Shown here: in pieces, positions 1-54,096 of the stretch
Layout of the letters: each line of letters starts with the position of its first letter
Numbering within the stretch: position 1 is the stretch's first letter
Assembly: GCA_973895155.1 (NCBI GenBank)
Contig: OZ316898.1
Location: forward strand, 622,751 to 686,750
Source: Marsupella aquatica
Lineage: Eukaryota > Plantae > Marchantiophyta
DNA: 64,000 nt
Direction: 5' to 3'
Notes under the pieces: generated by a model
The model's input: the letters and a program-made list of their open reading frames with translations, nothing else
Told to the model about the DNA's origin: nothing
Database searches by the model: none
Made by a program: the position numbers and the translations under genes

Positions 1-2455
1 TAATCGAGGAAACCCTTCACAAAGAGGGTTCACCACTACACACCTTGCTTGGTGCCCTACCACGGAATTATCAAAAGCATCAATAATATTGTTGAACCCA
101 ACTTCTCCTTCACCCACAAAAATCTCCCCACCAACTTCACAGATATGGTCGTTTTTCCGTCCACAAAACCCAAGGAGGGTATCATGTTTGCAAGCCATCT
201 GCAAACACATGGCAGATGAGCCAAGTGTAAGGCCATGATGTCTATGTAACTCTTTAGCATAGACATGAAAGTGAGTACAAGATGCAGTTTTACAAGTCAT
301 GGCACTAGTAGTACCTGACTGTTCGCTTGACACAAGTCTCATCCTCTGCTAAATAGCACGGAATAGGCCCTGATATGTTAAGACGAGTTTTGATTTGCGA
401 GTAAACCTCTGCAATAAACACAAATTGCTCTGCATGGATCCCTGCTCTGAACACTTGCATTCCTCTCCTGTCTCGTTGAAGGGTGTTTAAACTCGGCCCA
501 ATTATGTTGCTTGCCAAACAATCAACAACTCGCCTGCCCCCATGTAGGAACAATGTTTGACAAAGAAGCTTTGTTCCTGCCTTATACCTGTATCCCTCTT
601 TTGTAGTATTGAGGTTTGAAGCTATATCCGACAGCATATCCCAAAGAGCACCTCTCCCACCAAACGCTCTTGTTCTGTGAGCCAAAACTATGGATTGGCA
701 TAGCTTAACCACCGACACCTTGTTTGGTCCGGGCTCATAGTCCAAGCAAACCTCTTTGATGCTTGGGACTCGGGACTTCAACATTAGGAGTTTATGACTT
801 AAATATCTGGTCAGCCGACGCTCTCTGATAATGGAATTTCTGTAAATTTTGGCCTGCCTCTGAATCTCTGGACAAGTCAGGTAATCTAAGCGCCTACCAT
901 TGCCAGTGGTCCTTTCCCCTCTTTTCTCAAGGGCCCTATCTTCTCTGAGTACCCTCAACCGAAAGTCATCTAGTGTTTTTATGGAAAAACACTTGGAACA
1001 TGTCAAGTCTTCAAACCCTCCCCCTAGTTCGGACACTCTCCTACATTCCCTATGTCTAAATAGACCAGCGATGTAATAGGTTTGTTCACAAGTTAAAGAC
1101 CAAACCTCTTCCCTGACCAGGGGCTCTGCATACCAGACACCACCCATTTTAAGCTGGTCGCTTAAGACTCCCTTGATAGGCCTGGATTCTGAACCATACT
1201 GTACCTCATCCCGCCAAAGACCCCAACACAACAACGACAAGTTATCAAATGTACCTCTCTCATTATCGGCTGTGGACACCCGAGATGAACTAGTGGAAGC
1301 ACCTCCAGCCGATTTCTTAGTCAAGAACCCTTGGATTGTCCTCTGTTTGACATCCCTCCCATCCACACTACGGGGTCGTCCTGGGCCCCCAGTCCTGACA
1401 GGCTCATTGCGAGCCGGTCTCTGAGATCTGGCCACATAATCAAGGTGGATGAGGCCAGTACAATGGGCTATCAGGTTGGCTTCAAGGTTCCATTGTTTTG
1501 GAATCAATGTTAAGTGGTGCAGACAGAAATTGCAGAAGAGTTTAAGTGTGTGTAGCTCCACTGGCTCCTTATGCACATCACCCTTAACTACAAATGTGGT
1601 ACGACCAACAGTCTGTGATTCGTTGACCTTTTCTACAATCCGCATATGTAGCTCTAGTATGCCTCTATCACTTAGGGTATTAGCTGAAGCCCTCCTCGCA
1701 ATCTCTTGGGCCTCAACTCTCTCACCCCTATTTGATGCCACACGACCTGCATGCTTCAGAGAACGCAGGTGCAAGTTTTTGAAATTGGTGAATGTATTAT
1801 TGATAGATGATCGATCCATCAATACACCTTTGGCTACTGCTTCAAAATGCCTATCACACTTGCAACACTCAATATGCCCCCATGGCAAATTATCCTTGTC
1901 CCAGGTCTTCACTCTCCACTTGTGGTCCCCATATTTAAAGTCCTCCATGTGAATCTTCAACTTATCAACAGACTGGGACCACACTCTCTTTAGATCATTG
2001 CTCATCACTTGAGACGTAAAGCTGACTTGGAGTTCAACCACTTGCGATGGGTCAGCACAATCTGGACCTTCCTCGAGCACAGGTTCTTCCATAATGGGAG
2101 AAGCTGGATGGACATCACTTTCTGTGCAAGACGGTCCATTTGAGGCATTGCTACTTTGGATGACTTGCTGCAACCCGATTTGGCAATTCTGTTCAGGCAC
2201 AATGGCAGGCTCCAGTTCATTCTTGCGGATGATAACAATGTTTCCACCCCAATCTTCGACAAGATTATAAATCTCCCATTTTGGGGGCATCCGAGTGCCA
2301 AGACTGACATCGATGAAGTGGAAGTCAAAATCAAACTGAGACTCCAACTTGAGTCGAGCATCAGCAAAGGATTCACCTATCTTGTAACTATACGACGAAA
2401 TAGGTTTCCTTTCCCCACATTCTGTGTCTACTTGAAACAATGTTGCAGGCGGCAT
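1..2455 (-). CDS. P-element/THAP9-like DDE transposase, 3' end outside the window. Exon 2455-315, intron 314-199, exon 198 to <1, with a probable 1-bp frameshift near 187-190
   Basis: The 716-aa ORF has two Cx2C...Hx5H zinc fingers (IECCKC...HLRSLKH; LFCNFC...HCTGLIH). It then has GGRRVVDCLASNIIGPSLNTLQR (like the P-type 'Y..LR....LPS..TL.R' segment) and CYLAEDETCVKRTVR (like the first catalytic 'DEM.I' strand). After the GT-AG intron comes WLA, then in a shifted frame HDTLLGFCGRKNDHIC...FNNIIDAF...ARCVVVNPLCEGFPRL, open to the window edge. Confidence 0.6.
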
Positions 2456-4235
2456 TCTCTCACTACCTCCACTTATACCCTATTATCCAAAAATGGGCCG
2501 CCAAAATTAATGATACATGTAATGAGACTGACATGCAGCCTTCCAGTGCTCTTCTAAAGCACTCAAACGTCTGATTGGATCTCCAACATTGCTTGTTGAA
2601 ACCAGGTCATTTTGTGTGAGTGAAAGAGGTATTTTGAGCGTAACTATAAATTGTTTAATTTGTGTATCTAGCAATACAGAACTTCAGCAAAACAAGGTTG
2701 CGAGATTTGAGTCTATAATATGATTGAGACTTAGTGCTTCCCAACAGTGGAGACCGCATCCACTGGACCAATCCCATGAGAGCCTTGCCCCATCCCGGCC
2801 ATTTCTCATGGTGATTGGCTTTTGCAAGATCCTTTGCTGCTTTCTCCGACATTTCGGGTGGGAAGGGTCGTACCCTTTGCATGCAAGGACTCCAGTTTCA
2901 GCGTAAGCATAAGAGGGACAGGGATCTGCACATGGCCACTTTAGCTTGTCCCCATTCTAGCTTGTCCCGGTTCAGCTTGTCCCATGTGCTTGGTCCATGT
3001 ACAGTCGGGGCAAAGCCCACACTCCAATCCCTCTCCTCCACATCTCATTTGGGCCGCATATGCTCAATCAGCAATGACTTTAAGACAAAGTAGGAGACTT
3101 GACAACATTGAACAACCCTACACAGATAACCACCCAGACCCTAAGGACTGGCTCTAATCACTCAATCCTCATCGGGCTACCTGCTTCAAATTTAACAAGG
3201 AACGCTAGACTGCCGGCGATGAAATCCAGCAGTCTCCAATGGGGGCATGACTTCCCCATGGGTTCCTTGCATTCGACGGGCCCTGCAAACAAGTCCAATG
3301 TCTAGAGCAGAAATTCACAATACAAAAAGATTGAAACTTATCGAGAACCACACAAAGCCCTGTACGTTAGTCTTTTGAAGTAGAACTGGACAAGACTATG
3401 ACACAATTCTTCACAATCAATGAGGCAATGCAAAGTTACATGGCCATACCTTGGATAGAAAGAACAACAATGAAGAATGTCCCGACTCTCCCTTGTCGTC
3501 CACAAGTCCTTCAGTTCAAATATTGAGAGCAATGTCCCGACTGATACAAGAAAACCCACATAAATTAGTCTCTTGCAGTCGCACTGGAAAACACCAAAAA
3601 TTTTCAATCTCACCTTACAATGGATGAAGCAAAGTAGAACTCCTTGGCCATACCTTGTCCAAAGACGGGAAGATACAAAGACAATCGGGAATGTCAAATG
3701 TCCCGACGCTCTCCATGCATTTGCCCTGATTACCAACAACATAGCATGGTGAGAGCTATGGGGATAGCATGAACTAGGTGGACATATTTTGTTGTGCGCA
3801 AACAACCAACACCTTTGAGCAAATTTAAGCAATAACGCACCTAGCTATATATCTCCAAGTTAGCCTCAGGTGCTCAATTGCGTGCAACCCTAAACTGAAC
3901 GCCTCCTTGTCCAAAGGTTCTTCAATTAATTCATTGAGTGCACTGTCCCAACTGACAGAAGAAAACCCGTGTTAGTTTTCAACCAGGCAAAGCGCAGCAG
4001 CATACATCAATTATTACTATGATGCCTTTGATTTCAATGGCAGGATTGCCATCATTGTTTCTATTGTAAGAAACTCAGACTACCAAGGCCAAGGATGACA
4101 TACTAATTTTGATACTGATGTTTATACAAAAATATGCGTTGGCAAAAACATGAACGCATTGTACAAAATGACCGCACTGGTCATTTGAGATGCAAGCCTA
4201 AAACCCTGCCTAACAACCAAGAGCTATGTACATAC

Positions 4236-4634
4236 CTACTCGCCGTCTAGCAACTCTACCTCGCCTAATACAAACGGGTCGGTGTTCCAAAGCTGACACA
4301 CTTTCCAGGCACGCTTTTGTAAAAACACCTCATTGTGCTTTACATCTGCATCCGGATGAACATTGCATGTTGGGCACCTAGCAGTCAAAGGATGGATGCA
4401 ACCAGCACCAATAGCATACTCTACACCACGTATTGTACACGAGAACATGATTGATGTGGGGTCCATAAATTTCTCCCACACAGATTGTCGAGTCATCCGA
4501 GATGGAGGAGCAGAACCAAAGAGGAAAACAATGGGCACGTTCCCCTTAAGCATGCCTAAAGCCTTCAACTTATGGCGCAACCTGACTCCCTTCTCATACA
4601 GAAGACCTATAGAACGGCTTCGGGTGGTTACCAT
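4236..4634 (-). CDS. Hypothetical 132-aa protein with a CxH-x5-CPTC cluster, possibly a passenger ORF of the left-hand element
   Basis: ATG-started ORF with protein-like composition; no family recognised. Confidence 0.25.
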   Translation of the reverse strand: MVTTRSRSIGLLYEKGVRLRHKLKALGMLKGNVPIVFLFGSAPPSRMTRQSVWEKFMDPTSIMFSCTIRGVEYAIGAGCIHPLTARCPTCNVHPDADVKHNEVFLQKRAWKVCQLWNTDPFVLGEVELLDGE

Positions 4635-5799
4635 TGCTCTACCCCCGACGTGTTACCTTGGCGTGAAATGTGCAAACTGCTAGACCCCAAAGGACAATAG
4701 ACACACAAAGAAATGTACCTGCAAACATCACATCTAATTTTTTAGTAATCGAAGTGCAAAAGAAGGCATGTCTGGATTCAAATGCAAGCAAATTCAAGCT
4801 AGTGAAAGGCATGGCAGATGTAGGCAATTCAATGCAATCGGGAATGCAATGGAGGACAAAGGTTAGAAGAACTTACTTGCTTGTTGGTTGCGTCTGTTGG
4901 CACGACACCTGGACACTGCTCTCCCGGGCCGCTCTCCTAGCTCGGACAAACTATAATAAACTTCTGTAGAAGCATAAACATAGACTTATGGTCATGACAG
5001 TAACATTTTGGGAAATTTAGCAACTAGCAACTCGGAAACTTCACCTCAGTAAATAAAAAGGCACAATGAACGGGGCTCACCGTTAACTCCTCCTTCAAAT
5101 GATTGGGTCACCACTCCTTCAATAACATTAATTTCCACTGGCAGTGAATTGTTTATATCTGCACATTTGCCAGACATTTGAGTGTGAGTCCAGAGTGTGA
5201 GTTCACTGTGATACAAAGGGTAAAATAAAAATCCAATACATGGAATTCACACTCCTTTACAAAACCGTGAGACAGACCAAGGCAGAAATAGACGCAATGG
5301 AGGGAACAGATGCAAACCAAAACCTTTGCATCCATAGACAAAACATAAATGGAACTAAAGAAGAAGAAAAAAGACATAGCATATGAAAAATGAAGCAGGA
5401 AACAATTTATCGAGGTACATAAAAGCAATGCAAGCGGGAACGTAGGCAGGACGCAACATACTGATTGTTGAAGATGGATCCTGAACAACCTAGCGTGTCC
5501 TCTGATCTTTGTTCACTTCTCTCTATGGCAACTCAACATGCTCCAAAATGTTTCCCGCACTGCCGGCCCTCCAATTGACTTGTGCCCCAAAAATATGAAA
5601 TGCTCCTCTACAACTTAGAAGCACTGGCGAGTCCTGCAAGGAAATCATAAGCACAGTAAGAGACAAGCAAAATTGGATAACTTAGTAACTGTGGCGGTCA
5701 GGGCCAAGATACTCACACTAACGGATATGGTTGTACAAGACCAGGACAAGGCGACGAGTACTCCCGCAAGTACTAGTGCAATGAGAGCTTCACCGATGG

Positions 5800-6570
5800 C
5801 CCCGACGATGGCTTCAAACAAGAGCAGCAAACCTGAGCACTAGCAAAATAGGCAAGAAAGTCAAATCATAAGCCCGAAATGAAACCAACAAAATTATAAG
5901 AGAAAGTAGATGCGAAGGTCAAGGCCAAGGTACTTACAATGGCATTCAGTGGAACCTCGGACAATGTTTCTGAAAAACCGGGATGAGGCACTAGGTACTA
6001 GGGCAATGACGATACCTGCAAGAAGATGGGCCTGGCAATGGCTATTCACAACAGAGCAACCACAACACTGAGAGATAGTCAAAGTGAAGCACTGCTAATC
6101 CAGGGATGCAGAGGAATGTACGTGACCAAATGCAAGGAGGACTTGGCAGGGAACAAGCTAGGCGGGGAACTTGGACGCACTGTCAAACCATTGAGAAAGT
6201 CCCGGAGAAAGTAGCTGCAAAGGTTAGGGAAGAGGTACTTACACTGGCATTGCAGCAGAGAAACACTAGATTGAAAAGCTTTTGAAAACCTGGATGAGGC
6301 AGTCGGTGCTAGGGCTCCGGCGACAGCTTCAAATGAGAGCAACAAAATTGTAGCAAAGAATGCGCACTACCACATGAGATAGCAAAGAGCTCTGAACCAA
6401 AGAAAGACAAACAACCCCAAAGCATCAAACGGATTCAAACAACGAGCGAGACACCCAGGAGGACGAGAGAGAGCCAAGCGCAACAAGCATGAGCGGCTAT
6501 GAGATGGGACAATGAGCATCAGGTGAGCTTGAGGGCAAAGGCACTTACAATGGCGTTTGCTGCAAGACCG
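5800..6570 (-). repeat. Degenerate ~305-bp repeated units, each carrying a minus-strand GTAAGT splice donor
   Basis: ggtacttacaatggcatt (~5929), ggtacttacactggcatt (~6234) and gcacttacaatggcgttt (~6541). Shared blocks tgaaaa(a)ccNggatgaggca and gcttcaaa...gagcaNcaaa. Confidence 0.5.
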
Positions 6571-7152
6571 TCACCAGGCCAAGGCGAATACTATCAACCG
6601 GGGAATCAACTATGGCAATGGCTTCAATGACGAGCTTCAATCGGGGCTTTAGTGATGGCCACCAATGCCGACACGGGTGCGGACAGCTTGAAAATCAACT
6701 GCGATAGCTTCAGCGATGGCCACCAATGCAGACAATAGCAAGGGAAGAGCCTGGGAGGTAGCTGCGACGAGCTAGAGCCTGGGAGATTGATGCGACAAGA
6801 GCTTGGGAGACATGCGGGCAAGGCAGGGGACCTTGGTTGCGAGGCTCTCTCCATTCGACATTTGGGCCCGCATTCGGGCAACGCACGGGAGAGCAAATGA
6901 GGAGGGAAACCTGAGACCGGGATGGTCTGGGCCCCAGAACCTTCGCACTCCAACCGGGACTCAAACCCGGTGACAATCAAACCCTAAAACCTTAAAGCGC
7001 GCATACCCTGGGCATACTTGGGCCACAGATCGATAATTGGAGGGCCCCGATCTTCCCTCCCTCGGATCCAATGGGCAGGGATTGGCCCCATGTGTTTCCT
7101 CATGGGGCACTTCAAAAAACCACCCTAAACCCCTCAATATACCCTACCCTAG

Positions 7153-10100
7153 TGTGACACGGGTAACGTGTCACTTGACCGAACCCAGGTCGTAGATTAG
7201 GACTTATACGGTCATTAGGACCGTAGCCATAGCGTAGAATAGCACGTATAGCCGTCAAGTTGCCATTATGATTAGATTAGGAGTAGGTTAAGATAACCAA
7301 ATAATTACGAGTTCAGGAAAGGGATTATTACGCACGACCGAGGTACGGTGGCGGCAGCAGAGTAAAAATCAGTTAGAAGAATCACGCTTGGACCGAGGCG
7401 CCGACTTCAGCTCGTTATCAATGACCAAACGGCCTGACCTTCTCACGCTCGGGCTCGTCCTGGCACCCCCATAAGAGAGGAGCCGATGGCACTGCGGGCC
7501 ATTTGCTCATGTTTACCTTTGTGGAATTCACGGACGCTGCCATCCACTCGCCTTCTTGATTGAATCCAGTCGACCTTTACGAGGAGATTATCGAGGGAGA
7601 AGAGCGGAATGTGGTGAGATTTAGTCAGGACGAGCGAGGCCTCCGCGAAAAAGGACCAGCCAGGTGGGAACGTGGACGCAACGAACCGGACTACGAGGTT
7701 AGTATGACCCTCACAGCCTTGGGATTTTGGACCTTGTTTGGCGAGGTAGGTGCTAAGTTCTCCGAGACTTACTGGTACTCTTGCCCCGAGAAAGCCGCTT
7801 ACGAACGAAGGTACGCGAAGCTGGTAACCAAGGTAGCACTGGTTAATTGCGAAAGGACAGCCATCACCAGGGATTCTAGCTACAACGAGCTGCGAGACTA
7901 CATCACCGAACTATATCTCAGCGAGGAAGGGCTTAGATCGGTAGCAGAGGCGATTCTTGAGGTTCCAGCTAAGTTCTTTAAGCTGAAGGGAAACCAACGG
8001 CTTACTCAAGCGGAGTTTGACAACATTCTGGGGTACCTAGACCAGCAGATCGCAGCCGAAAAGTGCCAGGAAGACATCAGCAGACAACGGGAAGCGGCGC
8101 GTAATCTCACGTTCCTCGGGGAAAGCTCCAACGCCTTCAACTGGGATATGGCTACCCGAGTGCCTCAACCGATGACCACCGGAGTACCGACGAACCAGTC
8201 CCAAGTCCGTCCAGTAATCAACACGGAGTGTTCTTCGGGTTCCGAGTGAGCTAGTCCGCAACTCGAACAGCGTCCTCGTAAGCGGCCAAGGACTACGACG
8301 GCCCCCGAATCAACACAGACCGACGCCGCGCCTGCACCTGCCCCGGCAAACCCCCCGACCAACCAGACCCGACGGCCCCCGGATAACCCGAAGTCCAACT
8401 TATTACAGGTAATCCGCGTCCCCGAGGTAGTCTGGATCGCGATCAAGAAACTCGAACATGCGGACTATCTCAAGGAGCATCAGTTGGAGCGGTTCGCCCA
8501 CTTGCTATGGAGGCCGTGCGCCGCCGGGCCGAAGGAGATTTGTGAGTTCATCTCCAATTTCGACACTGATGCGTCAACCACCAAGGTTTCGGGGCAGGCC
8601 TTATCACTCACGGAGCATCGGTTAACGCAAATTTTCTGCCTACCAACCGGGCCGGTGCCGGTGGAAATCCGAATTCGGGATAGGGAGTATACACCGCGGC
8701 ACTTCAAACCCGAGGGTAAGACGGACAACGGATACAAGCAGGGGGCGTGCACCAACTTAACCTGTATGGAGCGGCTTAACTTCATACGGACTACCCTACA
8801 CATGATTGAGCCACGATCCGAGATTTCCCTCTGCACGATCGTGCAGGTGGAACAGTACAAACGATGAAACTGGGCCCAATTCTTCTACCAAAGATTCTCA
8901 GGGGAGCTGAAGCGGGCTCAGGGTGGTATGGCTATTGGAGGGAAGACTTACTTGGGAAGTCATATCGCCATTATCCTCGCCTGGTACAAGGCACGGCGGG
9001 AGGCCAGAGGAAAGAATATGGCCACCTCAGCCCCGGGTAATGTCACCCCCGCCCCAGAGGAGGCAACCCCGACTACGCGGACTACCGTCCCTCGGGCAAA
9101 CCCCGAGCCGGAAGCCCCGACTAATACTCCACAACCGCCCCCTGTGGAAATTCCACCGCCTCCTTCCGTTGAGCCTCCGCTACCTACAGTACAACCACCC
9201 CCAATCCCTCCACCACCTGAAGAAACCTTCCCCTCCCCAGCACTGACTACGGAGGAGCTCATTGCCCCTACCGAGGAACCACCGGTACCCGAGAGGATGG
9301 AGGACTACCAAGTAGCCCCGGGGACCATGGCCTACGACCTGGTCCAGAAGTTTAGCCAGACTATGTCTGGGGAGCTGGCGACATACATCGAACAACAAGT
9401 CTTGACGTACTTTCAGCCAGCCTTCTTCATGTTAGAGCACCAACCATGGATCGTCAGCCGCTTGGAAGAAGAACTCATGGCGAAGGGGAATGAGATCGAG
9501 CGTCTCCAGATGCTGGTAGAGCACCTCGAGGAGGAGGCAACGACCCACCGCGAGAATTTAGTCTGCACTGTCGAACAGAGGGACGGACTAACCCAGGAGT
9601 TAAGCAGAGCGCAGGCCGAACTCAAGAAGCTGGACGACACCGTGCTTCAATTACGCTCAGAATCTTCGGCTCGGGTTACCAGCCTGACCGACCTCAACAA
9701 ACAATTCCTGTAGGCAGCACAGCAGGTGGCTGGTCTCTCCGCCGAACGAGATAAATTGCTAGCGCAGGACCAGGTCCATCGCGACGCCATCGACCAGCTC
9801 AACTTGGAGGTGGCGCGGCTCCAGACTGAAGCCGATGAAGCTGCAAACGAGGCGGAGGAAGCAGTACGGGACAACAAGGCTTTGCAGGACCGCGTCACCC
9901 TGCTCGTCCTCCAGCGGGGAAAACCTGGGCCCACCTCTGATCAAGGCGGCTCGAGGTCTCACCCCGACAAGGGGACCAGCCCTGGTCCAACCACTGCACA
10001 CACATAAGGGGTGGTTAGCAAAGGGTAGAAGCAGGCGCCCCGCGAGGCGGTTAAGTCAGCGGCATCTTTTGGTTAGGCGTAACGACAGAATGACTATCAT

Positions 10101-10990
10101 TAGGCGCCGATTAGCGGCAGTAGGAAGAATTAGGGCCCGTCAGTTAGGATCAGCCAACGTAGGATGGAGTCCATCAACGGACTAGAGTTTGTCAGTAGGC
10201 TTGGCCGCTGCCATTCCGGTTGGCACACTCGTAGTTGACGGTCAACCGGTCAGTGCAGCGTGACCAGTAGTCAGCAGATAGTTAGTCAGTAGGTAGTATC
10301 CCGGAAGGTAGTATCCTCCGGTTCTCTTCCGCAATGGTAGTATTTAGGCTTCCCCTTCCGCGATGGGAGGGGGGAGAAGGCTTAGTTATATCAGCAGAAG
10401 AAAGGTGAGGCACGGGGAGTCCCGGCCTGAGTAGGGTCAGAGCGCACCAAGGAGTGAGAGCCAGAGTCAAGCTTGCTGGGCAAGGGCGAGGCAGGGCCTC
10501 GTAGAGACTGGGCATCGACTGCCGTTGGGCCTGCTGACCCCCTTTGAAGTCGAGTCAACCATGTAAACTGATGCTTCGCTGAGTAAATGTAGTCTTTTCC
10601 CCCTAATGTTTCTGAGAGTAACTGGTGTTGTGTGTATGCTTTGTCTGGGCAAAGGCGCCATTTTAAGGGACGTACCGGGTGCGAACTAATGTTAGGGATT
10701 GCCCCTCATTGCATGTCACAAGGTCCTCTCACGTCGATGGCTTGAAAAGCCCCAAGTCGGGAGTTAGTCCGCGTCACTAACTGAGGGAATATTCCAGCGG
10801 TGGAAAATAAATATACCTATGTCAAGTACGAATTATGCGAGTGTTATACCAGTAAGTATATCGGCTTAGCCCGACTTAGGGCTATTGAAGGTCACTACAC
10901 ACCTCCTTGCCCGAACCCTCACCCCTACTGGTGGTCGAGGTCGCACCACGACACTAACCTGGATTTAAGGCCCAGGTTAGGGGTGCGACA
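7153..10990 (+). mobile_element. 3.8-kb solo-LTR-like element (TGTGACAC...GTGCGACA) with 5-bp TSD CCTAG
   Basis: CCTAG at 7148-7152 and 10991-10995. TG...CA termini with 6/8 inverted identity. No internal LTR pair and no RT or integrase seen. Confidence 0.7.
7509..10007 (+). pseudogene. Single ~830-codon ORF (Pro-rich linkers, NWAQFF segment, C-terminal coiled coil) broken by four in-frame stops; retrotransposon accessory-type protein
   Basis: Track ORFs at 7560, 8484, 8928 and 9726 share one frame. Internal stops are TGA 7557, TGA 8247, TGA 8865 and TAG 9711, with no frameshift. In-frame ATG at 7509. Confidence 0.7.
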
Positions 10991-11257
10991 CCTAGACCCC
11001 GCGCTAAACCCCACAACCACGTCCACAACTAACAATGGCATACCAAAGGACATAGACACGTGTACCTATAGGATGATGCCATGTGTACCACTAAGATGAT
11101 GCCGCGTGGCAGAGATGATTATATACCCCCTTCCCCAAAAAAAATTGGAGCCAAATATGAAGTGCCCTTCCTTATTTAGAAAGTGACATTTGTATAAAAG
11201 GGCGGGTTGCTTAGTTACAAGTCAATTCTAAAAATTACTTCAATATGAATTAAATCG

Positions 11258-11312
11258 ACCCTTGAATCGTTCTCACGTCCGACCCGTTTTACCTAAGAGT
11301 GGGGGCCCAGGG
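11258..11312 (+). mobile_element. Orphan right-type terminus of the CCCTGGG-TIR family
   Basis: ACCCTTG-aatc-GTTCTCACGT, then 34 bp ending TAAGAGTGGGGGCCCAGGG. Same architecture as the ends at 13847 and 14593. No partner TIR found in the window. Confidence 0.65.
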
Positions 11313-12160
11313 GGCTGTTGTTTTGATAGGATTTGGCAAGCGAGCGAGATAGCCCCTGCAAACCCTGAAAACCCATGGCATCCCTAGACCCAGATGAGCT
11401 CAAAAGGATGTAGTCCTCCTTGAGAGCTCTCCACTGCACCCAAGAAGTCTTTGAATGGATTCCTCATTGGGAAGATATTGTCATTTTTGTTTGGCGCTTT
11501 CCCTTAGTGTTGCTACCGCCGTGGCTGACGACTTTGGTTTGCCCTTAACCCCCAGGGAGACACCAATCCCCTCATATATGCTTCTGGAAACATGCCACCC
11601 CTGGACCTACTTTGGTCCCCAAACTTTGGCTCCCTACCTGGACACCAACCCGCATGTTTGGGCACGCCACCAACTGACAATGCCCATAACTTTTTAGTTA
11701 GGCGTCCGTAAGCGGAGTGCCTTAGCTTGCTGTGATTGGGCCAACCCAGTGCTCATGCCTAGGCCCTCAGATCCCATCATCACCTAGGACCCTTGATTGG
11801 CCCAACCCAAATCGGGCCTAACTTGTGCCCCAAGTGTCCATCGCCCATGGAGTAAACTCCATTGGCCTTGGGCCCAAGAGGAGCTTTCACTCAAGCCCTC
11901 AGAACTTAAAGTCTATGAGGGGGTCCGGATGGTCAATCTTGAGCCCAACCCTTTTTCCTTGATCTGACCAGCCCTCAGCTAGTCTAAGTCCTTAGTGTGT
12001 GTCACCAGCTTAGCGCCTTGCCTTTGTCACTGCCACGTCCCATTGCCCATAAGTCTCCCCATGCTAAGTCCTCCCTGGATGGCCATTTTGGGCTTGAACC
12101 ATAAGGGAACTTGGGGTCAGAGTCAGCGACGCCGGAGCTAAGTGTTAAGGTATTTGAGTT
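11313..12160 (+). repeat. Dispersed ~850-bp non-coding repeat, copy 1
   Basis: Colinear with 56261-57114, from ggctgYt...aggatttg.caagcg.gcgagatagcccc to gctaagtgttaaggta.ttgagtt. Confidence 0.9.
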
Positions 12161-12164
12161 CCAT

Positions 12165-12556
12165 GACTAGTATGCACATTGGTCAAATGTAGAGTAATAC
12201 CTTCATGCTCACAATAGAGGTTGAATTCATTGGAAATATACTCACTGCCATTGTCTGAGCGGAGATACTTCACCTTCTTTCCCGTTTGTGTCTCAACCTA
12301 TGTTTTCCACTTCTTGAAGATTGGAAACACCTTCAACTTCTCACGCATGAAATAAATCCAAATTATGTGTGAATAGTCATCAATAAATGAGACATAGTTT
12401 TTATGCCTGAAATTGAAAGAACTAGGGATTCCCACACATCAAAAGGAATATAATCAAGTGTATCCTTGGAGGTATGATGAGCAATGTTAAAACTGAAACA
12501 ATGTTGTTTGCCAAGAATACAATGCTGACAAAACTCCAGCTCACAAGACTTTGCAC
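12165..12556 (-). pseudogene. Ty1/copia GAG-pre-integrase/integrase fragment
   Basis: Minus-strand translation gives GAKSCELEFCQHCILGKQH...YVSFIDDYS..IWIYFM...KKVKYLRSDNGSEY, with stops. Confidence 0.85.
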
Positions 12557-13847
12557 CCCTGGGCCCTCACTCTTGCTATATTAAGTGAACCCCCCTGAGA
12601 ACAGACACCCCCCGTGTACCCCTTCTTAATATTTTTGTTCACAAAAAAAATCCCTTGTTAATGTAAAAACATTATTTTTTCCTATAAAAATTTATCCTTT
12701 TGTAAATTATAACAGAGTTTTTCAAGGAATTAAAAAAACCCTTGAATTTTTAAAAATTGTAAATATCATAGTGAAACATAAAAGATTCTATTTTGCATAG
12801 GGGAATATTATGTTACGCTGATGTTCATGGTACATATTTTATATAGATCATAACAAAATTAGTACTAAAGATTTATAGTTCTTCCTAGAGTATAGGACTA
12901 TAACTCAGGCAACTTGTAGACCTCATAGAGATAAACTGAACTAGTACAAAGGCATTATTATACTATGCTATATCCTTGGAGGAATAATTGCATATATACT
13001 ACTTATGTAAACTCCAATTGCTAAATTATTCTATCTTGACTAAGAATAGTATGACATCAACCATTAACACCAAATGATAAGTAGAGTTTTTGGCAACTTC
13101 TTTCATGCAACCTGACACATCAAACCACACATTAATCATATATATTCTAGACACAAAGTACTAATAATACAAAAAATGACTACTGAAAATTGTGGAGAGT
13201 AATACCATCAAATCTCCTTTGGCTGAAATTGTTACTTAGACATGGTGGGTAATTTTCCTGCCATCTCTGCAATCAAACAACTGTGAGCATCGGGTACCCC
13301 CCCCAACCCAATGATCAAGGGAGTACACCACCCCACACACAAACACACCTGGCCTCATACCTGGCCATTTGATTGGAGGGAATTCAAAAGTAATCTTGTT
13401 TGTCTATGTGGGATTGATTCATGGGTCCCCATCAATCCCAGAACCCCAAACGAGTTGGGCCCCCAAATCCTGGCCCAACATTTACTTAACTCCCAACTTA
13501 ACACATGCGGGTAAACAAGTCTACCATGCAAGCCCATGAAACCAAACGTGCCTTAAGAGGATAAATAATTAAATATCTAATTTACTATATGGACATGTGT
13601 GCCAATGAAGTGATAACATGTGTGCCAACCATATAGTGACACGTGTCCTTGGCATTTTAGGTACCCTTGCATAAGATTATTGTGACATGTATTTGAGAAG
13701 AGCCTTATTACTAATATTGTGATGAATGTATATACATGGATGTTGCCTACTTTAAAAAATATTATAAAAATTAGTTTGCATTACATTAAAAATACCCTTG
13801 CGTTGTTCGCACGTTCTCCCTGCATTAGTAACGCTGAGGGCCCAGGG
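12557..13847. mobile_element. 1.3-kb non-autonomous TIR element (CCCTGGGCCCTCA...TGAGGGCCCAGGG), AT-rich
   Basis: Perfect 13-bp TIR and the subterminal ACCCTTG....GTTCGCACGT motif. Flanks differ (CTTTGCAC / GTTTAAAT), and the host copia lacks the zinc knuckle and protease at this site. Confidence 0.8.
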
Positions 13848-14650
13848 GTTTAAATCGACTCTTGGTTACTGATAAAGCAGAAGAGGAAGCATGAGAGGTT
13901 ACATGCATTTTCTTCCTACTATCATCTGCAAGAAGAGTGCTTACCGTAGGAAATCTGATCCTTACCATAGAGTATGGTCTGATTCAAATGCTCATACAAT
14001 TTTGGCAAGGAGATAAGAAGAAACAAAGATTTCTTCTTGTCTTCAACTTTTTCATTAACAGTGGCCAACTCAGACACTATCAAGTTAAAGGTATCAATAT
14101 GATTGGCAAGTTTTGTACCTTCTATCATGTGCAGTGTCATCAACTTCAAGGTTATGTATAAACAAGTTGCCAATTCTTTTGGTACATCTGTTTAAGTTGT
14201 TCCCACAATTTTATCAGTGAATCCTCAGTCACACTTGGAGTAGAACATTAGATGCCAAGTGTAACCGGATTAAGTTGAGAGCTTGTGCATAGATGTCATC
14301 TCAATCCTCCTCAAACATTGCTGATGGCTAACTTTTCAATGATGCGCCCAAACCTTGCAAAACTAACACATCTTGCATTCGAACTTGCCCCCTGGGCCCT
14401 CACTCCGTGTAAAAGAAGTGGACCCCCTACGACCAGGCCCTTTTCCTGTTTACCCCTTGTTATTTCCATTTTACTATTAAAAGTTTCCTTATTACCGGTA
14501 ATAATTATAATTATCAATTCAAAATTAATAAAAAAACCACCCTTTGAGCGTTCACACGTCTTCCACATATTAGTTAAGACTGAGGACCCAGGGAACTTGC
14601 CATAACATGAAATTATTATGACCGGTAAACTTCTCCACCTCATATTTTGC
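13848..14650 (-). pseudogene. Decayed Ty1/copia gag (UBN2-type), interrupted by a MITE
   Basis: KYEVEKFTGHNNFMLWQV|RMQDVLVLQGL; ...HIDTFNLIVSELATVNEKVEDKKKSLFLLISLPKLYEHL. Confidence 0.85.
14390..14593. mobile_element. 204-bp MITE with CCCTGGG TIR and 8-bp TSD AACTTGCC
   Basis: CCCTGGGCCCTCA...TGAGGACCCAGGG. AACTTGCC at 14382-14389 and 14594-14601. Removing the element plus one TSD restores the gag frame WQVRMQD. Confidence 0.9.
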
Positions 14651-15599
14651 ACTAGTAACTTTTGATGGAACCATTGTACACCTCTAGAACCTTGAAGTGC
14701 CAAAAATCATTTTACAGCTTCTCAATTTCACACAAATTTGCACATCAGCCTACGACAACACGACATCATTAGCCACAAAATTACCAAAAATGAAAATTGT
14801 TGAAATTGAAATCCAAGAGCACTCATAGGTACCCTAGAAGGTATTGGATTTTGTCCCAAAATTTGTTTGCCAAAAACATATCTCAGTTGAGATATTTTTA
14901 CTGCCGAGTAAGGGGGGTTAAAACGTCAAAATTGGACCCCCAAGGAGAATCAATTCACTCAAATTTGCAAGCAAAGTTGTTTGACAAATTGTTTGCACTG
15001 GCCCCTACTCAACTCCCTTAAGTATGCCCTTGAAAAATATTGTGTCAATACAACATCGGATGATTTGCCAAAAATCCAATTCCGTCCCCAAAACGAGCTT
15101 GCTGGAAAAATATATTTTCCTTAAATTCCCGCAACCCTTGTGCAGGCCTTGTAGAAGTTTTTTCAGAGCTGCCCAGAGGCTGCCACATGTGCCCTAGGCC
15201 CCCTTGAACCCCCTGTCACCCCCCTCAACCCTTTTTCCACGTCCGCGCGTCACCTTGCATGAGTAAATACTTGCGGCAGACTTACCCCCCAATGTCCAGG
15301 GACCAGTTTCAAGTAGTGTGAAACTTGTGTTTTAAGTTTTAGGGACTTAGCACTTTTGTCGTATTTTAATGAATTATTTAATCTTCATTTGATCCATTTC
15401 AAATCTCATTTCTAAATTCAAATTAACACTAATCCTTTGTCATCAAATTTTTTCAAGCTTCTTTCTTATTCATTCACAACTCAAAGTAGTCATAGAAAAT
15501 ACTCAAGCACTGTTTTCATTGTTATACAATCCATTGCAATGACAACAAAGGTGCCCCAAAACAACTTAACTCTTGTCTTATTTAAATAGAAATTCATGT

Positions 15600-35620: not shown

Positions 35621-36961
35621 ATCACAATCTCATCACCATCACATATTTAGCCGTTGAAAATTGATTTCTTTGATTACGTCGTCATCCCTTGTCCACAATG
35701 CTTGCCTCCCGGGTTGAATTTTTTGCATTTCTCTAGTTTTCAACTGAAGCTCACTCTGAACACAAGTTGACGCCAAATGCAACCTTTATGTCAAAGAAAC
35801 AATCGTTGGTCTCCCCCTCACACCATAGCTTTCTTAAATAAAAAAACTACGAATCTTTCATGTGAAGCGATGACTCGTTTGTTTTGTGTGTTCTTCCCAC
35901 CGAATCGACAAGAGCTCTTTTGCCAATAGCTAAGTGTTGTCCTCCAGTCTGTCTTGTGGCGATAATGTTCAATGTAACTCACAAACAATCAATCATGAAT
36001 GATAGAAACACGATTTCTGCAATGTGTAAGCAGAAACCGTCAAAAAACTCAATTCCTCCATATTCAACCTTCCGTTGATAAATCTCCTCTATCTTTTGAG
36101 CTTTTTCTTTTGTACGAGCACACACCAAGACCATCAGGAGACTCAAAACCGTCGATTACCGCCTTGTTGAAAATTGATTTCACTTCATCAAACACACCTT
36201 GGATGAACATGGGGGTCCACGGATTAATTGTATGAATAGTATGCTCCCCTGGGTGCCCAGAGAGGCATGGTTGTGTGGTAGCTCACTTGAGTTGAGACTC
36301 GTAGGTCTAGAGTTCAAATGTTGACTTGTTCTCTTTCTCTGGGGTTTCAAACTTTTTTAGAATTTATTTATTTTTAAGTATGCTCCTCTGGGCACACTAT
36401 GAGATTAGAAGGCCATAGGAAGGCAAACAAAGTACATTGATTGTAGACATTGCTCTATGGGGGTGTAAACTAAGGCACTTTACATAACCCTAGCCATCTA
36501 AAAACCAAATACAACCCCAACCCCAAATGAGGAGATTATTGTGTCAATTATAGAAGCCAAACCAAGTTTTCTTTACATGTTTCACCTCGCCCTTAAAACA
36601 AGGATGTATTCTCACAAAACCACATCTGCATGTGGTCTAGAAAATACACTTGGGCAACCATCATACTTAGGATTTTTTGTGGCCTCACTTGTATCCAATG
36701 TAGGATAGGGAGTCCAGTTCTTCCCAGTCACGACTACAAAGGAGACACTAAAATTTTGTGTATTCTTTCCAAGCTCTGTCCTCTGGTCTGCAATGATTAA
36801 GCTCCAGGCTTCTATCCTAACATAGAAAAGCTACTAGATACGGATTAGTTGGCTAGTGTCTTAAGATATATTTTATACAGGCCAAAGGCAATCACTGACT
36901 TTTTGAGCAATTTCTTCTAGTGGAAGTTAGACTCGCTGATAAGGCTTTGAAACAGTTCAAT

Positions 36962-44110: not shown

Positions 44111-46150
44111 GTTCCAAACCACCATGAGCCCTTAATATCGACTGCGTAAGGTCCTATGTGTTGCTCCAGAATTTCAAAATAGCTGACAGCACGGGCTTCA
44201 CAGTCGAGAAGGGCTGAAGTGCTACATTCACTGGAGACATTGAGGAATGAAGGCCATGGCCATACCGTGAGGAGAAGACAGAAAAAGTTGTGAGCAGCTC
44301 CTATAACTATCCATAACTACCAGAGAGGTCAGCGCATTTCATGATAGCTAGAAAATGACATTCATTTGTCCACTAAGATTGAAGGCACAGAGCTGCTGGC
44401 TCTCAACCCTGACATCAACATTGAACTTCACGCTGTATACCGAGGGCAACGAAGCTGAGCATACTACTCAGAGATTTCAAGCCAGTTTCACAGGACTGGT
44501 AAGTGCTCGCACTACAGAAATCTTTGTTGTTCTTGTAATGCACAAACACAATGCTTTGACTTCCACTTTGCCTAGTGGCTTCACATACAGTTTATGCAGT
44601 AGAAAAGTAATTTTTAAACAACAGACCCCAAAAGAGACTTCACAAAAGAGAGGGCAATGTCCAAAGAGAGGGTCATGTCCTTCTCGGGTGTTGAAAACCC
44701 GACTCTTTGTCCCTTATTGTCCTCTTTTGCACTTAGTCCTCATTCCTTGGCCAGGGGAAGTGCGAACTCAATTTTACTCAGTCTATGGTCATACATACAA
44801 GCTCATATGTCCATTTGAATAGTTGACCAAGCTCCGAGCTGAATTTCTGAAGCTTTGGCAGAGTGTAAGAATGGGAACATACATGCAAACTTGTTTGGTC
44901 AAACACATAGAGGATTATGCTGCCTATTCAAATTGTGTGATGCTATTGGTGGCCACAGTTTTAGATGCCAACAAGAGTGTTATGATATTGTTGTATTGCA
45001 TGGTTCTATCAAAAAATGAACAATACTGGTAGACATTTCTGAAGTTGTTGCATGTTCAAAGCAATCCCAGAGTTGTCTACTACTGGTACTGTTTTCATCT
45101 CTAACAGAGAAAAGGTTCTTCAGAATGTTGTGGATGAGGTAATCCCTAGAGCATTCCATGCGTTTTGCACATGGCACTTGAGAAAGAATTTACAATGTCA
45201 TTCCAACAAGGCAGCCAGGAAAGCATTCGATGGACTAGTTTATGCTGCCAATGAAGACCAGTTTGTGAGGAGGTTAGACAATATTGCTTATGAGTACCCA
45301 TCAGCACATGAGTACATTGTCAAGACTGCTGATCCAGCTCATTATTCCGGAGCTTTTATGCCTTATCCCAGGTACACATGGCAATTACATACCCTTCTTG
45401 CTTTATTCAATGTACTAGAACCAGTAGAACATGATCTGTGAGACCAGTGAAGGACCAACAATTTTACTATTGTTGCTATAGTATATAGGTGGGGACATGA
45501 GACATCTCAATAGGCAGAGAGTACCAATCGAGCATTGAAGGCAGAATGCCAAGAAGTAGCTTTCAAGCAGTCAAATCTCATTTGGGACTACATGATGAAG
45601 CACTACTATGAGAAGAGGATGCTAGCTGAGTCCCTAAGCACACCATTTCCTTAAAATATAATGGCTATATTGAGAGATCGACATGAGGAAGCCTTCCAAC
45701 TTGTTCCAGACCCCTCAAGCCCTACAAAGGTAAGAATTTCAGATTTCATACGCACAGACATAATTTCTTGGTCGTGACTTTAGACCCTGTGAAGGAATGT
45801 TCTTGTGAAGATTGGGAGGATGTGGGCATTCCATGTATTCATGCTTGGAGAGCCATTACAAGGTTGCACCTTTGTCATTATGATTTTGTGTCAAAGTTTT
45901 ATTCTACAGAATCATTCAGACTACAATATAGTGCTAGTATTCCTGCTATTTTGAAGGATGACCTACAACCTGATACATGGTGTGGCCCGCCCTTGGAGAG
46001 ACAAAAGCAAGCCAGGACGTTCGACTGAACTAAGGCTTAGGTTCATAGACGAAGATGGAGTCCGGTTGCCTTGTGCTTGTGGATTTTGCAAGGAAGAGGC
46101 CTCGATGAACATACCTGCTTGCTTTGGAAAGACCACCTTGGAACTCAGCA
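44111..46150 (+). pseudogene. Decayed MULE/Mutator transposase (DNA-binding domain, MULE domain, SWIM finger)
   Basis: CPLRLKA; VFISNREK.L...HAFCTWHLRKNL; R|WGHETSQ*AESTN; SWIM CSCEDWEDVGIPCIHA. Several stops and frameshifts. Confidence 0.85.
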
Positions 46151-47449
46151 AGCCAGGCAAGGACATATCACCCTATTCATTAAAAGTGTATTCTCTTTTG
46201 TTCACTTTTAGGCCTCTAAATGTTCACTTTTTGGTCTCTAAATGTACACTTTTTAACCCCAAAAGGTACACTATAGTACAATACTCTTCACCCAAATGGT
46301 TAATTGTAAACTTAAGGGGACAAAAATGATCTTTACTAGAGGGAGTCTCATCCTAGTTCATTTACAAAGGATGAACATGGTGGTACATCTGATGGCCTTC
46401 ACCTTTATATCTTGCCCAAATGTACACTTTTTGAAAGCCAAATGTACACTTCTATTGCCCAAATGTTCATAAATTGAATAATAATACACTTTTAATGAAT
46501 AGATTGGTACATGCAAAATACTGTACAGGAGGTAGACAACAGAATTGAGTCTGAGGATGAGGATGATAGAATTGAGTATGTTGTAGATATTCAGCAGTCA
46601 GCCCCTTTTATAGATGATTCTGAAGACTGTGGCCCATCATTAACCTGTCCATTTGAAATGGGTACCTTCACATCTCTTCTGGCCAGTTGTTTTGGCACAT
46701 TTCAACTGCAACCTTCGGCTAATGAAGACTACTATTGTAAGCACTCCCCATGGAATTGAGAGGTTTCTTTTTCGTAATTGGTAAAGGGATGTTTTTTATC
46801 ACCGTGCCCTATGTACTGGTTGACATTGTAAAGACATTTTTGGAAGATGCCTAAATGTCACATAAAAGCACATGTTGTGTGCAAGTTCCCTTTTGCATCA
46901 TCACTGTTGAGCATAGACGACATTCGTAACGGCAAGCCCATGAACCATCCAACGCACAAGAGTCGACACAGAGAGATACGTGGTTCACCTCCACATGAGG
47001 CTACGTCCACGGGAACACACAAGAGCTTTACTGCACTCTAGGCTGACCGGCCATACCAAGCATCCACAGCACAAGCTCTCCCTATCTCTCAACTAGCTCC
47101 GTAACAATGAGCCTAAGTTCCACCAAGGTCTGGCATCAGCCCTGGCTATATGCACAACAACACTACTGCTAACATTAGCTAAGTCCTAACCCAAGTTAGA
47201 CTAATTGTGGTTAGCTCATGAGTCACAAGACTAGAGCAATATCTAACAAACTCCCCCTTGACTCTTGACTTGGGGACTGGACTAAATGCTACCATATGGA
47301 TTCCTCAGCGGGAAGTTCTAGACAATCACCAAACCAGGTCTCCCCCTAAAAACCACAAGGGTTAACTAAGGGTTAATTAGAACTAAGCCGTAGCCAAACA
47401 GGAATGAGTAATCCATATACAAATAGTCACACATTGCTAAATAACTCTA

Positions 47450-51607: not shown

Positions 51608-54096
51608 CGGTGATTATACCGGTGTCACAAGTTCTTCCTCAAACGGGAGCAGCTCCTCCTCAGACTCTCCGTCTGATCGTCGCAATCCTGAAGCTCCACC
51701 GACGCCAATTCTTCCAGTATCCTTTGAGTCACTCATATGAAACAATCACGAAAACGTCTTTTTTCAAAACTTCTCATAAAACTCAAAACTCAACACCGCT
51801 GCGTAGCCCACGAAGCTAGGAGTCCAATACTGAAAGCCGAAATCAAAATCGAAATTCAACGGAAAAGTTATTCAAATTTCGGTCGGGGTGGGTAAAACCT
51901 TGGAAAACTCCCCCGTTTTGACCACCTCGGAGAATAACCAAAATACCAAGTACAACCCGTCGTCGAAATCGCGATGTGATCGGTGCGCCGCGTTGCTAAC
52001 TCCAGTGGCAGGGCGCAGGCAGGGTCGCGGCTGGCGCCGGCGGGGTGCGAGCCGGTAAGGAGGGCACGGGGGTTCGTGAGGGCAGGGCCGTTCCAAAGGA
52101 GTAAACGGGGCCTTAAGAGGGGGGGCGAGGCGTGAAAAAAAACATGCAAATAGCGCCGACCGGCGCTGCGTGAGGTGCCGGTGTGCTTGGAGTGCAGGGG
52201 GGAAACGAACGTGTATACGGTGGGGGTATACGGGTGTATGCACCTTGTGTGTGTGTATACACAGACAAGAAAGTGCCCTAAACCCCCCCAAAGGCCAAAA
52301 AACTCCCTTAAGTTAAATGGAGATAACTCACATCAAATGCCGCTGTTTGAAACGAGAAAAGTGAACGCCGTCGACAGAAAAAGTTGCCAAATTTCACCGG
52401 CACTATCTGCTGCTCCAGCAGAGTAAATTATTGTCGCCGCGTCGCCTTCACTCTGCGTCAAGTAACAATCCCGGGCTCAAAATGACCGCCTCGCCGTGAT
52501 CAAACCGTTGAGCCGTGGCACTTCGTGTTTCTTCCACCGAGTTGGACGTCACGAAGAGAAACCCGGTTCAGATGAGAACAAGCTCCATAGCTTGTGAAAA
52601 AACCTGAACGCCTCCGTCACTCGTCACGTCGCACTCGGTAACACCTCGGCAACAATCCAGCTACCGAAACGATCAGCTCGCTTCAACCTTCAACTTGAGC
52701 TATAATGTGCGATCGCCCGAACACCGCACAGCTCACACCTTTGAAAAATGTGAACTCTGGTCTCTCCCCCGAAAAGCCGTCGAACACGAATAAAACCTGA
52801 ACGACGCAAACTTCAATTTCTCCGCACCACGGATACCGATCAGCAAGTTCTAACCACCGTTAGAACGCCCTCTCACTAACCTATCCGCTTAGCCACACAC
52901 ATTCGAGTTTCATGCGATGAAACTCCGAATGTCTCATCGATAATGAACGTTGGAAAAACCTATCACGAAAAAACCTCGTCACTTCCCAGGCATGCTCTGA
53001 TACCACTTGTTGAGCATAGACAACATTCGTAACGGCAAACCCATGAACCATCCAACGCACAAGAGTCGACACAGAGAGATACGTGGTTCACCTCCACATG
53101 AGGCTACGTCCACGGGAACACACAAGAGCTTTACTGCACTCTAGGCCGACCGGCCATACCAAGCATCCACAGCACAAGCTCTCCCTATCTCTCAACTAGC
53201 TCCATAACAATGAGCCTAAGTTCCACCAGGGTCTGGCATCAGCCCTGGCTATATGCACAACAGCACTACCGCTAACATTAGCTAAGTCCTAACCCGAGTT
53301 AGACTAATTGTGGTTAGCTCATGAGTCACAAGACTAGAGCAATATCTAACAATCACGTCTCCCTTTTGTTTTCATTCTATATTTAGCCTGAACATTGTGT
53401 TTTAAAGGATGTGTACAAATATTTTCTTTGCCTTTCTGGATTCCCTCCACTTTCTGGAGTTGAATAAACAAAAGAATTCTCTTTGTCAAGCCTAAGTAAT
53501 CTATTTGCGTAGTTTGAATAAAGTGATTCACCAGGACAGAATGTGACAAAATAAATGGCCCATGAAGGAGATGAATTGACTTCTTCATTGTGAATTCTTC
53601 TCCTTGTGGGCCACCCTTAGAAAGAGATGTGGATTGGTCCCTATCAGCCGTGGGTTGAAACGGACTTTCAAAAGCATATGTAGCCCATGGAGGTGGGTTT
53701 AAAATTGATTCCGAGTCCCTACAATTCATTCATTGAAAGTATGTGCACAAGGTCATAAGGGACCAAAGTCATTACTTTTATTAACAAAATTGAAAAAACA
53801 AGTTTGGAAGCTTTGAGTGAGGAAAACTTTGCCGCAAAATGTGATCCTCCAAGCCTGCTAGGTATTTATGGTACACCTGAGGCACTACAAGTTGAGTTCT
53901 AAGCTTCAACTCAGCAACTGGCACAAAATCAGACTATCCACTTCTAAGCCTAGTCACTATTTGCTATACACCATGCTCCCAGGCTACTCGTGAGAGTATG
54001 ACACAGCAAGGAGATTCTCAATAGTGGTCTTCCACTCGTTCACATTACAGGGCACCCACTTATGAGTGTCGTACAAAACAAGTTACCCACTCTTTT

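Follow-up and report, generated by a model that had tools for sequence, protein, structure and literature searches.

Positions 1–11312 of a 64,000-nucleotide (nt) stretch of DNA from the liverwort Marsupella aquatica (assembly GCA_973895155.1, contig OZ316898.1, forward-strand positions 622,751–686,750; hereafter the window) probably hold the 5′ two-thirds of a once autonomous, now decayed copy of a cut-and-paste transposon, the transposase of which is a deeply divergent member, or a sister, of the P element/THAP9 superfamily. The copy reads leftwards from a terminus at 11312 and leaves the window at base 1. Complete elements on other contigs carry the same termini around homologous genes, and among solved structures the P element transposase is by far the best match to the fold predicted for a full-length relative.

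Termini, transposase gene and target duplications occur together

The terminal 13-mer TGRGGRCCCAGGG has five exact matches within the window, three on the plus strand and two on the minus strand, compared with 0.22 expected by chance from dinucleotide-preserving shuffles:

11300–11312, plus strand
13835–13847, plus strand
14581–14593, plus strand
12557–12569, minus strand
14390–14402, minus strand

With two further sites that carry one mismatch the total rises to seven, a number attained in none of 100 shuffles, and the same five sites remain distinct when the query is lengthened to 16 nt. Both left ends, at 12557 and 14390, read CCCTGGGCCCTCACTC. The initial annotation had described three right-type ends and two matching left ends, with the end at 11312 unpaired in the window, and all of this is borne out: the sole other left-type match (1379–1394, three mismatches) is not a terminus and codes for a conserved GGPGRPR motif. 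Two more matches were set aside, one at 22929 (three mismatches), which appears unrelated to the terminus, and one at 36247 (one mismatch), which appears to be a different small repeat. The surrounding segment, 36240–36395, holds the small repeat GTATGCTCCCCTGGGTGCCCAGAG, which recurs ~135 nt further on and resembles a terminus only superficially.

The termini of the family are 15–16 nt long, CCCTGGGCCCTCAC ... GTGAGGGCCCAGGG, with paired tips in the short form CCCTGGGCCC...GGGCCCAGGG, and in complete relatives they enclose the transposase gene. In L002, a 9.3-kb public contig, the gene is enclosed by CCCTGGGCCCTCACT at 35 and AGTGAGGGCCCAGGG at 9332, exactly where the contig ends. A Calypogeia element, L001 (3136–15995), has the same termini with TCCTCAAT on both sides and is inserted into another copy of the same transposase gene, and a second one, L004 (5750–15856), has TGTACAAG on both sides and a right terminus decayed by two transitions. 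A more distant relative in Riccia sorocarpa, L003, has different, 136-nt inverted ends and an 8-bp duplication, CTAGTTAC. Perfect 8-bp duplications thus flank all four elements in which both ends are intact, namely L001, L004, L003 and a short element of the window described below; the duplications differ in sequence. The targets seen in the family are an abundant repeat, a copia element and a further copy of the transposon itself. Target duplications in the P superfamily measure 7–9 bp, typically 8 bp.

The CCC termini therefore belong with the P-like transposase gene, as the initial annotation had supposed: L001, L004 and L002 carry the same CCCTGGGCCCTCAC termini around homologous genes. 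L004 holds an uninterrupted open reading frame (ORF) of 1529 codons (L004:10001–14590 region) and, with its perfect duplication, appears intact and may still be active. At L001:15930–16080, a 66-bp tandem duplication comprises the right terminus and its flank, giving two copies of the tip, each followed by TCCTCAATTAATAG. A locus in the brittle star Amphiura, L005, shows no clear termini and many internal inverted repeats.

The transposase gene of the window

The gene occupies the left edge of the window, where the following features are recognised:

315–2455, minus strand: transposase exon 1, 713 codons plus 2 nt (ORF 305–2455)
199–314, minus strand: GT..AG intron of 116 nt, at a position common to L002 and L001 and absent from the intronless Calypogeia L004
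1–198, minus strand: start of transposase exon 2 (KHDTLLGFCG onward), leaving the window at base 1

The open frame runs for 716 codons from 2455 to a stop at 305. Exon 1 shares 67% identity with P0001, which is encoded on a Logan contig of 9.3 kb, and 44% with Calypogeia fissa P0002. All three frames end directly after AEDETCVKRTV because a GT..AG intron lies there, as seen in the DNA alignment of the window with L002; the intronless L004 continues uninterrupted across the site as AEDETYVKKTVRWLPKYDTLLGFCG. Calypogeia fissa thereby has intronless and intron-bearing transposase copies in one species, the intron falling directly after the codons of the first catalytic Asp. Beyond the intron, residues 736–798 of P0169 align by tblastn with window 189–1, in keeping with the description in the initial annotation of a transposase running off the window edge. 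In comparison with both L002 and L004, the window lacks 1 nt near 190–194, just after the acceptor, an apparent frameshift that would break the frame of exon 2 if the conserved splice sites are used.

Pfam searches of the window ORFs, including exon 1, found nothing. Exon 1 was searched singly, unjoined to exon 2; the catalytic core was examined in full-length relatives from the databases. In a structural model of exon 1 (mean predicted local distance difference test, pLDDT, 74.8), residues 1–80 form a confidently modelled ubiquitin-like beta-grasp domain, for which Foldseek gave weak matches (E 0.06–0.3, TM-score 0.5–0.6). Two zinc modules follow at ~140–345, then a beta-rich zinc module at ~405–510 and a coiled-coil and helix-turn-helix (HTH) region, and the end of the exon supplies the first catalytic Asp (AEDET). 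The ubiquitin-like or PB1-type beta-grasp domain (window 2216–2455, minus strand) with which the liverwort-clade transposase begins is unusual for a transposase.

The predicted fold points to the P element transposase

Profile searches retrieved 551 proteins with exon 1 and 117 with a profile of the full-length relatives; the named sources are liverworts (Calypogeia, Riccia), a brittle star, a coral and a hydrozoan. A Pfam search of nine long relatives found nothing, and the one domain seen among the relatives was a captured Ulp1 protease (PF02902), which two of them carry. Among 38–67 relatives, four motifs are invariant or nearly so: EDET, containing the first Asp; S-D-G-D-x-R-R, containing the second; D-Q-D-x-x-H-x-x-K-K-x-x-N, a DxxH motif; and G-x-D-x-x-E-x-x-x-S, containing the Glu. 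In the numbering of the 1005-amino acid (aa) relative P0119, D249, D369 and E606 are invariant across 38 relatives, and D422, H425 and D603 nearly invariant. An RNase H-type DDE core is present (AEDET, SDGD and DxxE), of which the window supplies the first Asp at the end of exon 1. D603 stands three residues before the catalytic Glu, as D528 stands before E531 in the P element transposase, where D528 contacts guanosine triphosphate (GTP) (PMC7776569).

The AlphaFold model of P0119 (pLDDT 82.4, predicted TM-score 0.74) has as its best Foldseek match the Drosophila P element transposase (6p5a; E 2.6e-11, target-normalised TM-score 0.68), and all remaining matches have E 2e-3 or worse. Alignment with VIA-align gave Z 21.4 over 409 of 442 residues (model 145–643 to 6P5A chain 131–566), a stretch that spans the HTH, the RNase H core and the helical insertion domain; the runners-up were Transib (Z 11.1), RAG1 (9.9 or less) and the hAT transposase Hermes (8.3). 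In the model, the DxxH motif and the helical insertion domain between the second Asp and the Glu are laid out as in the P element transposase. Among ESM-Atlas neighbours by language-model features, the ten best named all carry TNP-like Pfam families, of the P/THAP9 kind (scores 0.89–0.95). At the sequence level, one of the 38 relatives, P0256, passes the P-element HTH model PF12017 at the expected position (24.7 bits, cutoff 23 bits); PF12017 is weak in one further relative, and PF21788, the GTP-binding domain (GBD), reaches E 0.13 in one. The initial annotation had called the transposase P-like, and the structural match, the Atlas neighbours and the P0256 match uphold this. Past the core, P0119 (model residues 836–966) and the C-terminus of L002:5765–8293 have Tudor/chromo-like barrels (Z 6.5–6.9), which may target chromatin.

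Layout and decay of the large element

The features of the large element outside the transposase gene are as follows:

1–11312, minus strand: 5′ part of a large autonomous-type element, clipped by the window edge and collinear with L002
11297–11312, plus strand: terminal inverted repeat, 5′-type end, GAGTGGGGGCCCAGGG, aligning with the 5′ ends of L002, L001 and L004
11258–11279, plus strand: conserved 5′-type subterminal motif (ACCCTTG, four variable bases, GTTCNCACGTC), 33–55 nt inside the tip
11313–11320, no strand: flanking 8 bp GGCTGTTG, outside the large element, the expected right copy of a target duplication
7153–10990, no strand: nested 3.8-kb solo-long terminal repeat (LTR)-like insertion with TG..CA ends and a 5-bp duplication, CCTAG, foreign to the element
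4236–4634, minus strand: conserved Cys/His-rich ORF of 132 aa, on the strand of the transposase and upstream of it, 61% identical to L002:1971–2372 at the same relative position

Similarity to a repeat copy at 56261–57115 begins exactly at 11313, and the large element is an insertion in one copy of this abundant repeat (11313–12160). The two repeat copies are 81–89% identical; in a check of the window from 10900 to 14900 against Logan contigs from four public runs, the summed contig depth of the repeat was tens of times that of neighbouring sequence, and contigs of three runs joined this repeat family to another copy of a miniature inverted-repeat transposable element (MITE).

Collinearity with L002 extends through the gene (L002 3565–5715 with window 2463–310, and 5843–6041 with 203–6) and into the region upstream of it (1950–2357 with 4658–4251, and 2966–3096 with 3312–3182). 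The distance from the terminus at 11312 to the ATG is 8.9 kb, or 5.0 kb once the nested insertion is removed; the corrected value lies within the range of the complete elements L002, L004 and L001, which cover 3.5–6.7 kb (L002, 3.5 kb). The nested insertion has a GC content of 52–58%, compared with 43–46% in its surroundings, and contains ORFs of 229 and 261 aa that have no Pfam match. With its 5′-type terminus correctly oriented upstream of the gene and its collinearity with L002, the site at 11312 is the end of a large element, as had been proposed. The same annotation had called the element formerly autonomous, which agrees with the nested insertion and the apparent frameshift near 192; on these two grounds, the copy is probably dead.

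The 132-aa ORF has no Pfam match, occurs only in the window and in L002, and may be a lineage-specific accessory gene; since it is absent from the Calypogeia and Riccia elements, we rejected it as a family-wide gene. A DNA block 300–550 nt upstream of the transposase ATG is conserved across genera (window 2740–3020, L001:9622–9807, L004:9475–9711) and is probably a promoter or 5′ untranslated region.

Asymmetric ends and a possible mechanism

The two ends of the elements differ in their subterminal sequence. All six 5′-type ends, three in the window and one each in L002, L001 and L004 (three genomes), carry ACCCTTG, four variable bases and GTTCNCACGTC at 33–55 nt inside the tip, and this motif is absent from the aligned 3′ ends. 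Five 3′-type ends instead have ACCCCCCTGTGAAC at 33–47 nt, TACCCCTTNTTA at ~62–75 nt and CCTTGTTA near 100 nt. A 3′-type end is marked by the tip CCCTGGGCCCTCAC together with the ACCCCCCTGTGAAC and TACCCCTT motifs. The subterminal motif at 11258–11279 is a probable transposase binding site.

We suggest that the coiled coil, the HTH and the non-THAP zinc modules of the transposase would contact these subterminal motifs, and that the enzyme would pair one 5′ with one 3′ end as the P element does, cut at the GGG-3′ tips and insert with an 8-bp stagger. Elements reduced to ~100 nt of each end could then be moved in trans.

Two short elements in a copia host

Two short elements of the family lie to the right of the large one:

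14390–14593, minus strand: MITE of 204 bp that has an end of each type and lies between two copies of its 8-bp duplication, AACTTGCC (14382–14389 and 14594–14601)
12557–13847, minus strand: non-autonomous 1,291-bp element with its 3′-type end at 12557 and its 5′-type end at 13847, in the same orientation as the large element

Both are hosted by a minus-strand Ty1/copia element (12145–12556 and 13922–14389), and each has one 3′-type and one 5′-type end, oriented like the large element. The 204-bp element is the one for which a clean 8-bp duplication had been reported in the initial annotation; AACTTGCC is perfect on both sides, and an empty site was recovered. A contig from run X2 joins 14380 to 14593, skipping 212 nt (204 + 8), with nine letters that fit either side; this joint marks a paralogous copy of the host repeat in which the site is precisely empty. 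Summed contig depth in the MITE bin 14384–14517 is ~30-fold that of the left-flank bin next to it, and for the 1.3-kb element the depth in the bins at its ends is well above that in its interior; the ends of the short elements are therefore multi-copy.

The ends of the 1,291-bp element match those of L002 over 87–114 nt. It has no target duplication, its flanks being CTTTGCAC and GTTTAAAT, because ~1.1 kb of the host is missing between the copia integrase on its left (12145–12556, minus strand) and the copia gag on its right (13922–14173); other copia copies in the contigs diverge at 12557 and 13847, as loose ends. Loss of the duplication could most simply reflect recombination of two insertions that lay ~1.1 kb apart in one copia, or alternatively a transposase-induced adjacent deletion.

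Over their terminal 100–120 nt the three window elements are 62–68% identical to one another and 66–74% identical to elements of other species, and they have in common only the 16-nt tips and short subterminal motifs. The short elements are therefore separate non-autonomous subfamilies of the same family. We rejected their derivation from the large copy by deletion, as their ends are no closer to it than to elements of other species. On this point the initial annotation does not hold: it had the large copy mobilising the 204-bp and 1.3-kb elements as its derivatives, and at 62–68% identity neither descent from this copy nor mobilisation specifically by it is demonstrable.

Alternative explanations

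Several observations weigh against a straightforward place in the P superfamily. None of the 38 full-length relatives matches a TNP-like catalytic model of Pfam at E 0.01 or better, the RNase H model giving no match at all (PF21787, PF21788 and PF21789 were checked alongside the HTH model PF12017), a search of PDB sequences with the family profile retrieves no P transposase, and a single-protein search no transposase. No THAP domain is found in the window exon or in any relative, the models showing other zinc modules; THAP is typical of the P superfamily and not universally required. The termini begin with CCC, not CA, and the C-terminal Tudor/chromo-like barrels are extra. The P element is the closest match among solved structures only; as Kolobok, Dada and Novosib have none, the fold alone does not separate the family from them, and their cores also lack Pfam similarity, the RNase H domain of Novosib being uncertain (PMC5751038). 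These points would suit a family outside P proper, either an unnamed sister superfamily or the poorly characterised Novosib, which would share just ancestry and fold with P. We regard this as rather unlikely: the structural match covers HTH, RNase H core and insertion domain at about twice the Z of any other superfamily, the ten best named Atlas neighbours are all TNP-like, P0256 passes PF12017, and the DxxH and DxxE motifs fit P. Kolobok, which targets TTAA, and Dada, with 6–7-bp duplications in small-RNA gene targets, are excluded by 8-bp duplications of varied sequence. The 8-bp duplications and short termini would also suit a hAT element, such duplications being typical of hAT as well as of P; yet no relative has a hAT dimerisation or BED domain in Pfam, the motif is DxxH rather than CxxH, the termini depart from the hAT pattern, and four Hermes entries reach only Z 7.0–8.3 over 284–299 residues at a root-mean-square deviation of 7.3–8.2. 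With fold, motif, domains and termini all in contradiction, a hAT origin is hardly credible and we rejected it.

Further reservations concern the large copy itself. Its other end, with the 3′ terminus and the rest of the gene, lies to the left of base 1 and outside the window. The sequencing data are contigs of unknown library type, and the intron and splice sites are read from DNA alignment. The segments 4700–7152 and 10991–11200 have no match in L002, L001 or L004, and with ~2.7 kb of 4700–11200 thus lacking a counterpart in L002, the end at 11312 is assigned by orientation, end type and collinearity. This gap, together with a terminus-to-ATG distance that exceeds the 3.5 kb of L002 even after removal of the nested insertion, would be expected if the end at 11312 came from an unrelated truncated or non-autonomous copy upstream, the gene's own 5′ terminus being lost or elsewhere. 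We consider this improbable, as the end is of the 5′ type, upstream of the gene and correctly oriented, the corrected distance is within the range of complete elements, and 2455–11312 contains no second terminus. The best explanation of 1–11312 thus remains a decayed autonomous copy of a P-related transposon. Beyond this, we tentatively suggest, at slightly less than even weight, that the family forms a deep and undescribed clade, within the P superfamily or sister to it, that extends from cnidarians and echinoderms to liverworts, in which THAP was swapped for other zinc modules and C-terminal Tudor/chromo-like barrels were added, with a ubiquitin-like N-terminus in liverworts.

Other repeats in the window

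An inverted repeat of ~168 nt, with arms at 44111–44278 and 55219–55385 that lie 11 kb apart, may mark another large DNA transposon. Inside it are 300-nt direct repeats (46905–47204 and 53008–53307), 6.1 kb apart and 97% identical, which resemble those of an LTR retrotransposon.

Significance and comparison with known systems

Catalogues of land-plant transposons rest on hAT, CACTA, PIF/Harbinger, Mutator and Tc1/mariner, and to our knowledge P-type elements are not part of the usual set. Our literature search, which covered bryophytes as well as land plants at large, found none described in land plants; Repbase was outside this search, so that an entry may exist there. If our reading is true, land plants would here have their first documented P-type cut-and-paste transposon accompanied by its own MITEs. 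Standard annotation is liable to misfile a liverwort family of this type as hAT, on account of its 8-bp duplication, or else to leave it unclassified. The family has hundreds of relatives in public data and no Pfam model, and a profile would improve the annotation of bryophytes and marine invertebrates. With its defined ends, an intact liverwort copy would also offer a testable system for asking whether P chemistry, with its GTP cofactor and long staggered cuts, is ancient, and possibly a new transposon tool for bryophyte genetics.

Among the systems compared, Novosib (Repbase) was considered by its general traits. It shares with the liverwort family the lack of a Pfam-detectable core (PMC5751038); it is reported from 'lower plants' and green algae, and P-MITE, which assigns MITEs by duplication and terminus, lists those of P and Novosib type only in 'lower plants' (PMC3964958). 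The literature search returned nothing relevant on the features of Novosib. An 8-bp duplication is also associated with it. Transib and RAG1 give the second-best structural match (Z 9–11) and share the DDE and insertion-domain architecture, but Transib makes 5-bp duplications and has CACAGTG-type ends, and its match is about half as strong as that of P. The hAT elements Ac and Hermes resemble the family in making 8-bp duplications and in having a C/DxxH-type motif and an RNase H core that contains an insertion domain; they differ by their dimerisation domain and BED finger, by the weaker structural match (Z 8.3) and by other terminal sequences.

The closest comparison is with the P element and THAP9 (6P5A, 6PE2; zebrafish Pdre). 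P element chemistry uses a GTP cofactor and 17-nt staggered cleavage, and its insertion domain is a GTP-binding domain. The liverwort family differs in having other zinc modules and a ubiquitin-like N-terminal domain in place of THAP, in showing no significant match to the Pfam TNP-like catalytic or GBD models and only ~15% identity in the structural alignment, in its CCCTGGG termini where those of P are CATG, and in its C-terminal Tudor/chromo-like barrels, its proteins of 1000–1530 aa and its land-plant host. Shared between the two are the 8-bp duplication and short inverted termini ending in G-3′, as well as subterminal sites arranged differently at the two ends, which in P bind transposase (PMC7776569) and in the liverwort elements are predicted. 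The domain order is also the same, running from a zinc module through a coiled coil and an HTH to an RNase H core that a helical insertion domain interrupts, and both systems have the DxxH motif, an Asp three residues before the catalytic Glu and internally deleted non-autonomous copies.

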